A stretch of 64,000 nucleotides of DNA from Macrostomum lignano (GCA_002269645.1 NIVC01001505.1:186001-250000), one strand, 5' to 3'; shown: positions 5,701-31,296, numbered from the stretch's first letter. A program made the numbers and translations. The notes: generated by a model from the letters alone, not told the origin.

Positions 5701-7838
5701 CGCGGTTGAGCGCTTGAATCCGGCAGAGGTGCCCCTGACTGGTGGCAGTCTGGTGGCCATTCTGACCAAGACGCCAACGACAGGTAGATTGATTTATTGA
5801 TTGGTTACTTTACTACAGACGTCTGCTTTCCCCAAAGGCACCCATCTCAGTCTAAAGACACCTGCACCCAACTCACTCCACCGACACCCACCTCACTCCA
5901 CCGACACCCACCTCACTCCACCAAAACCAACTCACTCCACCGACATCAACCTCACTCCACCGAAACCAACCTCACTCCACCGACACCTCACTCCACCCAC
6001 ACCAACCTCACTCCACCCACACCAACCTCACTCCACCCACACCAACCTCACTCCACTAACACCCACCTCACTCCACCAACACCAACTCACTCCACTCACA
6101 CACACCTCACTCCACCGACACCCACCTCACTCCACAGGCACCCACCTCACTCCACCGGCATCCACCTCACTCCACCGTCACCCACCTCACTCCACCAACA
6201 CCAACTCACTCCACAGACACCCACCTCACTCCACCGATACCCACCTCACTCCACCCACACCCACCTCACTCCACCGACACCCACCTCACTCCACCGACAC
6301 CCACCTCACTCCACCCACACCCACCTCACTCCACCGACACCCACCTCACTCCACCGACACCCACCTCACTTCACCGACACCAACCTCACTCCACCCACAC
6401 CCACCTCACTCCACCCACACCCACCTCACTCCACCCACACCCACCTCACTCCACCGACACGCACCTCACTGCACAGGCACCCACCAACAGATTTATACAT
6501 AGTAAGTGTAAAAATACTTCAGGAATCAACAAAAACGACATAAAAGTTGATCTGCAAACATTACACGGCCAATCAAGTGCCGGATCTGCATCTGCTGAAT
6601 CGACGGGTTCACTTCGTAACTTTGTTCGTTCGTGTTCGATTGTAGAACTGAAAAAGGCAAGTTTTATTTTCTCAGAGATATTTTGCGGATAAGCTGTCTG
6701 ATTATAATATGACCTTCATCGTTTCTAAATGATTAATTGCAGCATCTGCTGGTTGTGAGAACGCCGGACATGACTTCCATCACCAGAAATGACCGGCTGA
6801 AATGCCGGTTGACAGTTCGAAGCAACGGGTTCGAAAGCGAAGATTTGGAAATTGTCTTCTTTGGCAAAGAGTGCGGCAATGTCGGCTCTGCAGGTGATGC
6901 GGCATGTGGGATTAGAATAAATTGGGGAGCATGAAATCCAGCTTTGGAGAATTTGTGATAGGGAATTAGAGATTTGGCGCATATAGGACTGGGAAATCTG
7001 GGATTGGGGAATCCGGGATTGGGGAATCTGGAATTGGGGAATCTGGGATTGGGGAATCTGGAATAGGGGAATCTGGGATTGGGGAGTCTGGGATTGGGGA
7101 ATCTGGGATTGGGGAATCTGGAATTGGGGGATCTGGGATTGAGAAATATGGGATTAGGGAATCTGGGATTGGTGAATTTGGGATTGGGGAGTCTGGGATT
7201 GGGGAATCTGGGATTGGGGAATCTGGAATTGGGGGATCTGGGATTGAGAAATATGGGATTAGGGAATCTGGGATTGGTGAATTTGGGATTGGGGAGTCTG
7301 GGATTGGGGAATCTGGGATTAGGGAATCTGGGATTGGGGAATCTGGAATTGGGGAATCTGGGATTGGGGAATCTGGGATTGGGGGATCTTGGATTAGGGA
7401 ATCTGGGATTGGTGAATTTGGGATTGGGGAGTCTGGGATTGGGGAATCTGGAATTGGGGGATCTGGGATTGAGAAATATGGGATTAGGGAATCTGGGATT
7501 GGTGAATCTGGGATTAGGGAATCTGGGATTGGGGAATCTGGAATTGGGGAATCTGGGATTGGGGAATCTGGGATTGGGGGATCTTGGATTGTGAAATCTG
7601 GGATTGAGAAATATGGGATTGGGGGATCTGGGATTGGGAAATCTGGGATTGGTGAATTTGGGATTGGGGAAGCTGGGATTGGGGAATCTGGGATTCTGGT
7701 TCATTAGATAAATATCTACGAGCATCATCATAACATCATATCTCGTAGCATCAAAATTAATAAAGATGATATTATTTACTCCAAAACTCGCTTTCAGACA
7801 CTCGAGATTCGCGCAAAAGACCAAGGCAGCAAACTTGA
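2739..7838 (+). CDS. Rel-homology-domain (NF-kB/Relish-like) protein, copy 1
   Basis: Exons: ATG-only 2739-2741 (tentative), 3012-3424 (LTIEEQP..RFRYESE..HPYYLHGDHCSNG), 4602-4702 (FNRLAVICVTRK), ~4798/4801-4935 (IRLAISL..TVYSDPINDD), 5685-5783 (IPT start), 6523-6656 (GINKNDIKV; GC donor), 6743-6893 (HLLVVRTPD), 7798-7838 (RKRPRQQT*). Splice phases are consistent. Confidence 0.85.
3448..3810 (-). mobile_element. tRNA-derived SINE with 13-bp target-site duplication
   Basis: Minus strand starts GGGGGCCGTAGCCCAGCGGTAG (A box) with B-box-like GGCTCGATTCC and ends in an A-rich tail. TTGATCTGCTGTT flanks both sides (3435-3447, 3811-3823). A homologous copy lies at 41527-41885. Confidence 0.85.
3845..4540. 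repeat. 12-bp minisatellite (AAAGCCAATCTC)n, intronic
   Basis: Direct reading; produces the SKPI-repeat ORFs. Confidence 0.95.
4990..5585. repeat. 7/14-bp minisatellite (GGGATCTGGGATTC)n, intronic
   Basis: Direct reading. Confidence 0.95.
5865..6480. repeat. 20-bp minisatellite (CACCCACCTCACTCCACCGA)n, intronic
   Basis: Direct reading; 20-aa periodicity in the ORF track. Confidence 0.95.
6985..7695. repeat. 15-bp G-rich minisatellite (GGGATTGGGGAATCT)n, intronic
   Basis: Direct reading; NPRFP 5-aa periodicity. Confidence 0.95.
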
Positions 7839-8249
7839 CAATCTGGAATAATTTTGATAAATTTATTTTGAAACAACTGCTCTGCAGATTTCTAGTTGTG
7901 ACTGAATATTAATTAATTCTACTCTGACTACTCATCCAGGCATGCTATTCGAAGTCAGTATAATTGCATGGTTAATAACATGCGTGTTTTTAATTATAAA
8001 CAATCTGGAAAATTGCGGATCAGTTATGCTCCAGAATTTTCGGTATGCTTATTTATCGTTAAAGCATTGCACAGTCTAAGTCCAGTTTGGTCTTTTATCT
8101 TAGCAGCCCTGGGTGTTTCTTGAGATTCTGTGCGGAAATTCTTCGTGTCTAATATCACAAATATATAAAAATGGAGTTGTTAAAATTTTAAATCAAAGAT
8201 TCTTTTCTTTGACAACAAGGGGTTACAGAAATTCAATTGAGATGATGAT

Positions 8250-28502: not shown

Positions 28503-28845
28503 TGGCCGTGCCAAAAAAGCGCTTTAAAATGAACACACAGGGACTGCACTGAGCTATTTTTAGAAACAGCGTCAGTTAGGAATCTCGTACAGCAAAAGCA
28601 GTGTTATTGCTGCTGGCCTTACATTTGCGTTTTTTCACAGAAAAGAGCAGAAAAGAAGTAGTATTCAATATATTTCTAACTTAGTGGAAGCAGGCAGACC
28701 TGTAGTGGAAGCTGGTTCAAGAATGGAAGCCTCATCCAGAGCGCATTATAATTAGTGGATTATTTCACAAAGCTAAAAAATTAAAATGTGAAATTAGCAA
28801 AGCGTGCATGAAAAACCACAACAACTGCTCTATGAACGTTTCTAG

Positions 28846-31296
28846 TATCAATCGACCTTTTCCGGGCCTCTCGGACCCCCCGTCAACACTGGAATTGCTG
28901 AGCACCTCTACATTGCTGAGTTGCAGCCGCCTTCGCTGACCATCGAGGAGCAGCCGGCTCTGTATCACCGATTTCGCTACGAGTCGGAGATCGAGAAGGA
29001 CAGCGGCAGAGTTGGTGGCCTGCTGCTCGGCAGGAGCTCCACCGATGGCAACAAGAGCTTCATGAGAGTTCGCGTCAGCGACATCGACCCAGCTGTGCAC
29101 TCGCAGCTGCAGCTGACTGTGTGCACCGTGAGCGCCGAGGAGAATGCTCCTCATCCGTACTACCTGCACGGAGACCACTGCAGTAACGGATATTTCCAGC
29201 TGAAGAAGCCTGTTGATGCATTGGATGGTAAAGCAGTTTGGGACATCTGGTGAGTGGCACGAGGAGCGACTGGGCCACGGGAGGGCTGGTTTCCACTGCA
29301 AAATCGTGCTCCCTGAACAGATTTCAGGGACAGGAACAGTTTTCGCCCTGAAGTTTCTAGTGTGTCCCTGCCAGAGACTCAATTGCCCGTTTTTCAGGTA
29401 GATGACCGCTGATTTAGGTAGATCAGCTGCCTATGAGCTAGATGAACCTATCTGGTAAATGGACCGCCTGGAAAGGCATCATGCCTCTGGGGATCCTAAG
29501 CCTAGAAGTGCGTTTACCGCTTGTCGACTGGCTCTCACTTTAGCACGTTGGAGTGAGATCAAATGTTCGCTGCCCTCATGTATAATACATGTTAGGGAGT
29601 TCGTGCTGATCTGGTTGAGCTTGGAAGCCCACGGTCGACCCTGTCTGAGGGGGGGGGGTAGTTTTGCGCCCGCAAGTACACCAAGCTGGACTGACGATGA
29701 GTCAAGCCGTGAAAATAATAAAAGTTGGTACACCCAGCCTCTTCAAGAGCACGCCAAGCTTTAGCTGCTAGCCCTATTTAACAACAAACAGATTTCGCAA
29801 AGATCAGCTTTTTTCATTTACGCTTGGGAAATAGGATTTTACCATAGACAAACTCGTTCGAGAGAAATATTTTTTATACTGACTCGGAAACGATGAAATT
29901 TGTTGTCAGTTATAGCCTATCTACGGTCGTGAATTAGCATTTCATTGGCAATATCAGCATTAGTATATACTGTCAACCCGCCTCTACTTAAAATGAAATG
30001 TTGTTTATCTATTAGAGTGAAGAAACTATTTGCAAAGAGTCAAGGATGCCTCTATGTTCGCTACGCTCCTCGCTTTGTTCCTAAGGAGTGAAGCGAATTG
30101 AACATTGAGGCTTCCTAGGAAGAGTCGCTCCAGTTTAGTTGTACAGGGTTGCTTATAGTGATTTGCAGGCATGCTCGAAGTTTCCCACGCACTTGAATTT
30201 TTCAGCTTCGACAGGCTGTCCGTGATCTGTGTGCCAAAGAAGAACAAAGCGAGCATGGAGAAAGCCATGGAAGCCAGACTCAGGGATGTGCCGACCCCCA
30301 GCGATTGTCCTACAGGGCCGTCAGCTCAGTACACCCAGACCAACTTGGCTCAGATTCGTCTGGCATTCTCGCTCACCTATTGCGATATTTTCTATCGAGA
30401 ATGGCTGCTTAGCACAGTGTTTAGTGACAAGATCGTCAGTGACAGTGAGTTTCTGTGATACTCTGATCGACTCATGTTGTTCTGTTCATGTACAGAATGA
30501 TTCCACAAATGTGTGTTTTAGAGGAAAAGAAGAACATTGACGTCATCGCGTTGAATCCGGCGGAAGCGCCAATGGATGGCGGCTGCACGATCGCCATCCA
30601 CACTAAGGCCTCCACCGCAGGTCTGATCAAGGACCACTAGTAGTAGATGGACGGGGCAGTTAGTGTCTTGAAAAGTTTTAGTAGAAATGGTAGCACTATG
30701 TTCAAAGTTCCAAATGTTTTAGACCCAACGAGGGTATTTGTACGAGAATAATCTATTCTACGAAACGATCGAACGTCGCTATTTGTTTTAGGCCAGGCAC
30801 TCTCAAAATTGACTTAAAATTGCAGGTAAAATATTTTAAACTTTTTAGGAATTCAAAAAGGTCAAGTAAAAGTCCACTTCTCGTGCTTCAACGATATCAA
30901 AAGAGAGCGCGTTGTCTTCGTTAGCGACGTGCACGAACTGAGGAAGGTACGGTCAGTTTGAATAAGGTTTGGGAGTCTGCATAAATTCTGTGCCTACTCA
31001 CTTTTGATGCTTCCAACTGCTGTTCCTCCAGCACATTTTACTCGTGAAATCACCCGACGTCCGGCACGAAACTACAAATGACCGGCTTAAGGCTGAGGTT
31101 AGCGTCCTTAGCAACGGATTCAACAGCAAACTGCTTGACATCGTTTTTTTCCGACAATCTTTTCCACCAAATCTGGGTGAGGACGCAAATATTTGACACT
31201 TTCTAAAATTCAATTCAGTAAATCAATCATTTTTTTCAATTTGCGAGTATTTAAGTTGCAGGAGTCGGGCGTTCTTTGAAGAGGCCTTTAAAGTGA
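28846..31296 (+). CDS. Rel-homology-domain protein, copy 6 (one intron absent; start exon not located)
   Basis: Exons 28846-29249, 30206-30444 (fusion of two paralogous exons), 30522-30620, 30849-30946, 31032-31176, 31262-31296 (GVGRSLKRPLK*). Frame intact. Confidence 0.85.

Follow-up and report, generated by a model that had tools for sequence, protein, structure and literature searches.

The DNA examined here, hereafter the window, is a 64-kb stretch of Macrostomum lignano contig NIVC01001505.1 (assembly GCA_002269645.1, Mlig_3_7), and it carries a tandem array of six Rel homology domain (RHD) genes whose predicted products stop at the position of the nuclear localization signal (NLS). The six genes, c1 to c6, lie head-to-tail on the plus strand between 2.7 and 31.3 kb, as determined by a BLAST comparison of the window with the c3 exons, with the following copy starting 1.3–3.1 kb past each stop. 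A draft protein built from the reading frames of one copy matched only M. lignano proteins named “RHD domain-containing” or “hypothetical”. Spliced mapping showed that the public model P0005 (446 aa) is identical to c3 residue for residue over nine GT-AG exons, and the P0005 gene is located on NIVC01001505.1 itself. The exon boundaries of the other copies were projected from c3 by homology, with AG/GT at all boundaries of the final models, and in five of the six copies (c1, c2, c3, c5 and c6) the frame is open from exon 3, the RHD exon, to the stop. The resulting gene models are as follows.

c1, 2739–7838, plus strand: RHD-only gene, P0007-like, 359 aa, from spliced mapping of P0007 and P0010; first coding exon 2739–2741, a single ATG codon followed by GT, assigned by homology to the P0007 locus on NIVC01000109.1; exons 3012–3424 (exon 3), 4602–4702, 4798–4935, 5685–5783, 6523–6656 and 6743–6893, terminal exon 7798–7838 (41 nt, first base 7798); C-terminus DSRKRPRQQT, stop codon ending at 7838.
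c2, 10929–13048, plus strand: RHD-only gene with an N-terminal extension, ATG at 10935, boundaries taken from c3; exons 10929–11060, 11271–11737 (exon 3), 11894–11994, 12082–12219, 12293–12391, 12473–12579 and 12748–12907, terminal exon 13011–13048; C-terminus SGTAVKRARPS, stop codon ending at 13048.
c3, 14392–18572, plus strand: RHD-only gene, identical to P0005; exon 3 at 16727–17193, terminal exon 18535–18572; C-terminus SGTSLKRARSS, stop codon ending at 18572.
c4, 20256–22560, plus strand: frameshifted copy; exon 3 at 20828–21288; terminal exon 22523–22560 would read SGTAVKRARPI, stop codon ending at 22560.
c5, 24156–26679, plus strand: RHD-only gene, P0006-like, 333 aa; first exon 24156–24158, a single ATG codon followed by GT; exons 24646–25049 (exon 3), 25191–25291, 25954–26091, 26161–26259, 26352–26449 and 26521–26679; C-terminus PESRTSLKSLRR, with a degenerate basic motif and the last intron deleted, stop codon ending at 26679.
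c6, about 28921–31296, plus strand: most divergent copy, P0008-like; exons 28921–29249 (exon 3), 30206–30444 (exons 4 and 5 fused), 30522–30620, 30849–30946 and 31032–31176, terminal exon 31262–31296; C-terminus GVGRSLKRPLK, stop codon ending at 31296.

The true start of c3 probably lies in exon 2, at the ATG at 16392. The one-codon first exons of c1 and c5 agree with where P0007 and P0006 are annotated to start on related contigs, and a further ATG followed by GT lies upstream of c4 (20256–20258); for c6, a start codon and a one-codon first exon were looked for and not found. A methionine donated by the spliced leader was considered for the “MATTTQ” start of P0006 and P0007, as the window has CAG/AAG at this position and the leader ends in ATG, and was ruled out by the existence of the ATG first exons at 2739 and 24156. 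Introns have also been lost within the array: intron 4 is gone from c6, leaving exons 4 and 5 contiguous (30206–30444), and the 3′ part of exon 8 has been deleted in frame together with the last intron in c5 (26521–26679). The public c6-type fragment P0008 skips exon 8 (31032–31176) and ends ESGVL in another frame, as opposed to the KRPLK predicted here, and the P0008 model and our c6 model with exon 8 cannot both represent the main isoform.

The array proteins end at the NLS position

A preliminary description of this locus, made from the DNA sequence, held that every copy stops 0–3 residues after an NLS-like motif, quoting the C-termini RKRPRQQT, KRARPS, KRARSS, KRARPI, KSLRR and KRPLK. The interval given for it, 7798–31296, runs from the opening base of the c1 terminal exon to the stop of c6. 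All six strings are present in plus-strand frames, each closing the last coding exon and followed directly by a stop codon, and the number of residues past the NLS column is indeed 0–3 in the array copies. A separate terminal exon of 35–41 nt, after an AG acceptor, carries the basic cluster together with the stop in c1–c4 and c6, while in c5 the terminal sequence is fused onto exon 8. DNA and protein alignments place the six stops within one codon of a single homologous site; compared with the stop of c2–c4, alignment of the terminal exon puts that of c5 and c6 one codon earlier and that of c1 one codon later. The position of the stop has been kept despite saturated synonymous divergence (dS >1.7 or not computable) in exons 6–9 in comparisons of c1 or c6 with the rest, and the same C-terminal ends are seen in public models from two further contigs, NIVC01000475.1 and NIVC01000109.1. 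The homology of the six stops suggests that they represent one inherited ancestral feature and not six independent events.

In the alignment, the basic cluster coincides with the canonical Rel/Dorsal NLS, KRAR and RKRPR matching the KRKR-type sequence of canonical Rel proteins. The monopartite NLS rule K-K/R-x-K/R is obeyed by c1 (KRPR) and c2–c4 (KRAR), and is broken by c5 (KSLRR) and c6 (KRPLK). The motifs of c5 and c6 are thus degenerate.

The 3′ flanks of the array genes

The preliminary description also stated that no glycine-rich region, ankyrin exons or transactivation domain follow the stops, and the motif scan, Pfam analysis and tail search of the 64 kb all bear this out. A six-frame scan of the window found no ankyrin core motif, and the sole match for a glycine run, at 43917, lies inside an unrelated G-protein-coupled receptor (GPCR) region. 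The array proteins have no Pfam ankyrin match, and ten intergenic open reading frames (ORFs) contain no Pfam domain. When the C-terminal tails of other M. lignano RHD paralogs were used to look for cryptic tail exons, only chance-level matches were obtained, the best of which (E 0.04) falls inside the GPCR gene. No conserved donor site was found ahead of the stop in the terminal exons. The ankyrin scan likewise gave no IκB-like gene in the 64-kb window, IκB, Bcl-3 and IKK not having been searched genome-wide.

Past their stops, c2, c3 and c4 share homologous sequence (80% column identity), with the following hexamers in the 3′ untranslated regions (UTRs).

13180–13185, plus strand: AATAAG hexamer in the c2 3′ UTR, 132 nt past the stop.
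18689–18694, plus strand: AATAAA, candidate poly(A) signal in the c3 3′ UTR, 117 nt past the stop.
22693–22698, plus strand: AATAAA, candidate poly(A) signal in the c4 3′ UTR, 133 nt past the stop.

In the alignment of the homologous 3′ UTRs, which is loose at this point, the AATAAG of c2 is offset by a few columns from the AATAAA of the other two copies. A search for transcript-level contigs carrying the array proteins returned only genome contigs of GCA_002269645.1. The Mlig_3_7 annotation is described as the product of genome-guided RNA-seq assembly, using experimental poly(A)-site and trans-splicing evidence (PMC5730564), and if the deposited proteins come from this transcriptome assembly then the model identical to c3 is transcript-derived.

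RHD identity and predicted fold

The Pfam profile RHD_DNA_bind (PF00554) matches P0001 and P0004–P0007 with 48–59 bits (59 for P0007) against a cut-off of 27, and exon 3 alone scores 37–40 bits. The R, R, Y and E residues of the R-x-R-Y-x-x-E recognition loop are kept in c1, c2, c3, c5 and c6. To examine the remainder of the protein, we used an AlphaFold model of P0005 built from an 85-sequence alignment, comprising six array-type proteins and 79 of the nearest others, which replaced an earlier run with six close paralogs only (predicted local distance difference test score, pLDDT, 41.5). Residues ~120–420 were modeled with pLDDT values mostly above 90 (ten-residue block means of 70–98), including a confident beta-sandwich at residues ~312–420, while block means were 36–52 for the N-terminal ~110 residues and 56–65 for the last ~25 residues, which contain the NLS. 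Foldseek aligned ~310 columns of this model over both domains of RelA (E 2e-21), RelB and c-Rel (to 7e-19), followed by p50/p52 (E 1e-19 to 1e-17) and NFAT/TonEBP (1e-14 to 2e-12), and also matched the isolated dimerization domains of p50, p52 and NFAT. Together, the AlphaFold and Foldseek results predict a two-domain RHD fold with the NLS tail directly after it.

In a search with a profile of the array family, RelB scored 44 bits, c-Rel 37.5, p65 about 33, Gambif1 (Dorsal) 20 and p50 16, the p50 match having an E value of 0.02 and being confined to the first ~90 residues; p52 was not found by the family profile search. When P0005 was compared with the PDB (E up to 0.01), c-Rel, RelB and p65 were matched and p50 and p52 were not. 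Among 1.84 billion representative proteins, 101 matches were obtained, and all of those with E 1e-10 or better (down to 1e-231) are from M. lignano; the best non-Macrostomum matches that we checked are named RelB-like and dorsal-like. Within the 85 aligned relatives, 72 have an RHD_dimer domain and only 2 carry ankyrin repeats, and the His before GG in the loop of these two ankyrin-bearing proteins aligns with Gly in the array proteins. The array proteins appear on these comparisons to be of Rel/Dorsal type, although with ~18–27% identity to class II Rel/Dorsal proteins their membership of that clade, at such low similarity, is provisional.

The label “p50-like” used in the preliminary description does not survive these comparisons (16 bits for p50 against 44 for RelB, no p52 match, Gly in place of the loop His and ankyrin repeats in so few relatives), and the array proteins should not be annotated in this way. 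Membership of class I NF-κB was rejected, the proteins having no ankyrin domain, no glycine-rich region and no RHD closer to p50/p52. NFAT membership was also rejected, with no NFAT profile match at E up to 10 and NFAT/TonEBP ranked behind RelA by Foldseek. In domain configuration the primary product is RHD-only, corresponding to configuration iv of PMC13042239: c1, c5 and c6 are essentially bare RHDs, and c2 and c3 add an N-terminal extension only. The class II trait of a transactivation region after the NLS is absent.

The more informative comparison is with other RHD proteins of the same genome. Further M. lignano paralogs (P0012, P0013, P0014 and P0019–P0022), some of them in a second cluster, have their NLS in the same columns as the array NLS and then continue for 19–54 more residues, with no ankyrin domain. 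Most of these tails are acidic and contain a hydrophobic motif (DLSDLLTSF, MDELLGTFL, EEDFMAFL, MDEFLQIV or QLFQEVLL). The remaining 73 aligned relatives have a median of 206 residues past the NLS column, as against the 0–3 of the array. The array is thus, as judged from sequence, a tail-less derivative of a short Rel-type protein and not a “pre-processed” p105, and the earlier picture of a pre-truncated precursor drew the wrong comparison, given that the paralogs of the same genome carry short tails without ankyrin repeats.

Selection, with probable gene conversion and decay

Exon 3, which encodes the recognition loop and the rest of the N-terminal RHD half, is 92–96% identical in DNA sequence among the six copies, with dS of 0.03–0.2, whereas synonymous sites in exons 4–9 are saturated when c1 or c6 is compared with the rest. 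This discrepancy suggests that gene conversion (concerted evolution) has acted across the array and has been confined to exon 3. Between old pairs, the ratio of nonsynonymous to synonymous divergence (dN/dS) in exons 4–9 is 0.19–0.35, indicating purifying selection.

The exception among the six copies is c4. A 2-nt GC insertion within 21495–21498 frameshifts its exon 4, and its recognition loop (20990–21060) has GFRY in place of RFRY with two residues deleted. On NIVC01000475.1, the c4-type copy gave matches of ≥88% identity for neither exon 4 nor exon 7, and the public models P0003 and P0009, which are fused or frameshifted, have the same mutated loop type as c4. We regard c4 as a probable pseudogene.

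At least two further related copies of the array are present in the assembly, on NIVC01000475.1 (positions 1–27186) and NIVC01000109.1. In the former, exon 3 is present at least six times within 27 kb, and the copies are not arranged collinearly with the window, which indicates that the structure of the array varies between related copies.

Repeats and neighboring genes

The introns of c1 are filled by large minisatellites with units of 12–22 nt, one of which yields a long, artefactual ORF of PNPRF repeats in the last c1 intron. Related repeats of 22–47 nt lie between the array copies, and the sequence downstream of the array contains a receptor gene, a probable uncharacterized gene and several satellites.

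3841–4532, 5079–5545, 5865–6485 and 6986–7695: minisatellites in the c1 introns.
8266–8712, 13636–13800 and 23070–23215: related repeats between copies.
35677–43735, minus strand: class C GPCR gene, metabotropic-glutamate-receptor-like, with ANF_receptor, NCD3G and 7tm_3 domains.
37202–38376: (CAGA)n microsatellite of 1.2 kb between the 7tm_3 and NCD3G coding parts of the GPCR gene, probably intronic.
48157–51049 and 54010–55652: a 23-mer satellite and a (GTTA)n satellite, respectively, near the minus-strand ORFs listed next.
53430–62209, minus strand: several long ORFs of 145–201 aa with no Pfam match, probably exons of an uncharacterized gene.

Discussion

A detailed comparison of the six copies with each other and with their relatives enables us to propose that this locus is a tandem array of lineage-specific, tail-less Rel/Dorsal-type RHD genes whose products end at the NLS, a reading to which, together with the mechanism proposed here, we assign a probability of roughly 0.6. 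In this model, a short tail would have been lost once, in the ancestor of the array, and the truncation retained since. The products of c1, c2 and c3, which have intact frames and obey the NLS rule, would enter the nucleus and bind κB-like DNA as dimers, contacting it through the conserved R-x-R-Y-x-S-E loop. A shared, gene-converted DNA-binding exon combined with diverged dimerization domains would probably result in similar binding sites and a differing choice of partner. The N-terminal extension of c2 and c3 (91 aa, with 12 acidic, 3 basic and 11 Gln residues) is predicted to be disordered; it is absent from c1 and c5, and the c6 model, for which no start was found, shows no sign of it. It is plausible that this acidic, Q-rich extension is an activation segment, through which c2 and c3 may activate transcription. 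Conversely, the bare RHDs of c1, c5 and c6 may act as competitors for binding sites or as modulatory partners of tail-bearing subunits, with c5 and c6 potentially needing a partner for nuclear import because their basic motifs are degenerate. In this scheme c4 would be a pseudogene.

Several observations weigh against this model. The Pfam profile RHD_dimer (PF16179) matches no M. lignano copy, and the C-terminal domain is identified from a predicted structure. In the recognition loop, Ser stands in for the canonical redox-sensitive Cys and five residues are inserted after the loop Glu, which means that DNA binding is not assured. Among the young copies c2–c4, dN/dS in exons 4–9 is 0.5–0.8, suggesting relaxed constraint and the possibility that some copies are decaying, and over the region within 10 kb of c3 the public annotation has no gene call for c2, c4 or c5. 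The activating role suggested for the N-terminal extension and for the paralog tails derives from their composition only, and heterodimerization with the tail-bearing paralogs, with which the array proteins share 23–32% identity, is something that we purely infer. The main gap concerns the 3′ ends of the array genes, which were judged from genomic sequence and public models.

Three other explanations need to be set against this reading. Most of the array could be debris, consisting of recent tandem or whole-genome duplicates that are drifting to pseudogenes, with the short C-terminus an inherited accident. The frameshift and mutated recognition motif of c4, the degenerate basic motifs of c5 and c6, the missing start codon of c6, the elevated dN/dS of c2–c4, the different array structure on a related contig and the several copies uncalled in the public annotation would all fit such a history. 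We nevertheless consider it unlikely, given that five of the six copies are open from exon 3 to the stop with intact splice sites, that old pairs combine low dN/dS in exons 4–9 with saturated dS and a stop kept within one codon, and that public models, reported as transcript-derived, exist for the c1, c3 and c5 types. Mis-annotation of the 3′ ends, such that the mRNAs run into unrecognized tail or activation-domain exons or are polycistronic or chimeric with the next copy, strikes us as very improbable. It is true that operon-like transcriptional units and trans-splicing occur in M. lignano (PMC5730564, PMC8629364), that P0003 and P0009 are fusions of neighboring copies, and that the stops were judged from genome sequence. 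However, the terminal exon that holds each stop is conserved and has no conserved donor ahead of the stop, the c2–c4 3′ UTRs are homologous and contain AATAAA-type hexamers, nothing resembling a paralog tail lies downstream, the intergenic ORFs have no Pfam domain, and the fused models contain frameshifted read-through that makes them look like artefacts.

The third explanation, which follows from the preliminary description, is that these are p50-type (class I) subunits made already processed, acting as constitutive repressors or needing a separate IκB-, Bcl-3- or IκBζ-type cofactor. Homodimers of p50, which have no activation domain, can repress, and the array proteins similarly end at the NLS, after which there is no activation domain, glycine-rich region or ankyrin repeat, and c1, c5 and c6 have nothing extra outside the RHD. 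This reading is nonetheless quite unlikely, less so than mis-annotated 3′ ends and more so than debris, as the profiles place the array with RelB, c-Rel, p65 and Dorsal at 44 bits for RelB against 16 for p50 and leave p52 undetected, ankyrin repeats occur in only 2 of 85 aligned relatives and Gly replaces the class I loop His, c2 and c3 have an acidic N-terminal extension, and the motif scan of the 64 kb gave no IκB-like gene. A survey has also reported no p50/p105 in Platyhelminthes (PMC11432056). Moreover, the RHD-only NF-κBs of a choanoflagellate, of medusozoans and of Nematostella are typically nuclear DNA-binding dimers that activate reporters in cell lines (PMC13042239), and a missing C-terminal tail alone consequently does not imply repression.

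If the array is indeed a family of tail-less Rel/Dorsal-type proteins, a further step can be imagined, albeit one that we hold to be doubtful: that the minimal Rel subunits of this flatworm-specific tandem family form a combinatorial dimer network, in which a common, converted DNA-reading head is combined with dimerization domains, NLS strengths and an N-terminal segment that vary, and in which tail-less members tune or antagonize tail-bearing ones. Were this the case, it would amount to IκB-independent control of Rel activity in an animal for which no Toll-like receptors were found (PMC8609888), within a phylum from which p50/p105 is reported to be missing.

Our literature search combining Macrostomum with RHD or NF-κB returned no description of the array genes. 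To our knowledge, flatworms are usually described as having no clear NF-κB, and this locus shows that Rel-type RHD genes have been retained intact and multiplied in M. lignano, in as reduced a form as can be. The array and its paralogs constitute a natural experiment within one genome, in which tail-less proteins can be compared with tail-bearing ones, copies that have an acidic N-terminal segment with those that do not, and strong with degenerate NLS motifs. As M. lignano is tractable to both transgenesis and RNA interference, what a bare RHD does in a bilaterian is directly testable.

Comparison with known systems

The class II proteins (RelA/p65, RelB, c-Rel and Dorsal/Gambif1) are the best sequence and predicted-structure matches for the array proteins over both RHD domains, and share with them the R-x-R-Y-x-x-E loop, the position of the NLS at the end of the RHD and the absence of ankyrin repeats. 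They differ in having a median of about 200 residues past the NLS, with activation domains, in retaining the loop Cys where the array has Ser, and in having no 5-residue insertion after the loop Glu. The end product of p50/p52 maturation resembles the array proteins in being an RHD that ends near the NLS without a C-terminal activation domain; unlike the array proteins, p50/p52 and Relish are processed from ankyrin precursors at a glycine-rich region and have the loop His.

Closer to the array are the M. lignano paralogs. P0012, P0014 and P0019–P0022 share with it the replacement of the loop Cys and the GGLL.GR and HP.(Y/F) motifs, and the paralogs as a group are likewise short proteins of 340–390 aa, some of them clustered, from which the array proteins are distinguished by the loss of the 19–54 residue tail past the NLS. 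A 2026 study of Schmidtea mediterranea described seven highly divergent RHD genes of unclear role and no clear NF-κB (PMC13563047); from this description we would place these with the array in one lineage-specific, long-branch RHD radiation.

The RHD-only layout is already an established category in non-bilaterians, and the NF-κBs of Acanthoeca spectabilis, medusozoan cnidarians and Nematostella vectensis share with the array a natural C-terminal truncation and the absence of an ankyrin domain (PMC13042239). Those proteins, in contrast, are treated as class I-like NF-κB orthologs, usually one per genome with three in A. spectabilis, and the Nematostella NF-κB keeps a glycine-rich region that the array proteins do not have (PMC13042239). 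The array differs from these RHD-only NF-κBs in being Rel/Dorsal-like, bilaterian and organized as a six-gene tandem array on three related contigs, and what is new here is a Rel-type, bilaterian and tandemly amplified RHD-only family that ends exactly at the NLS.

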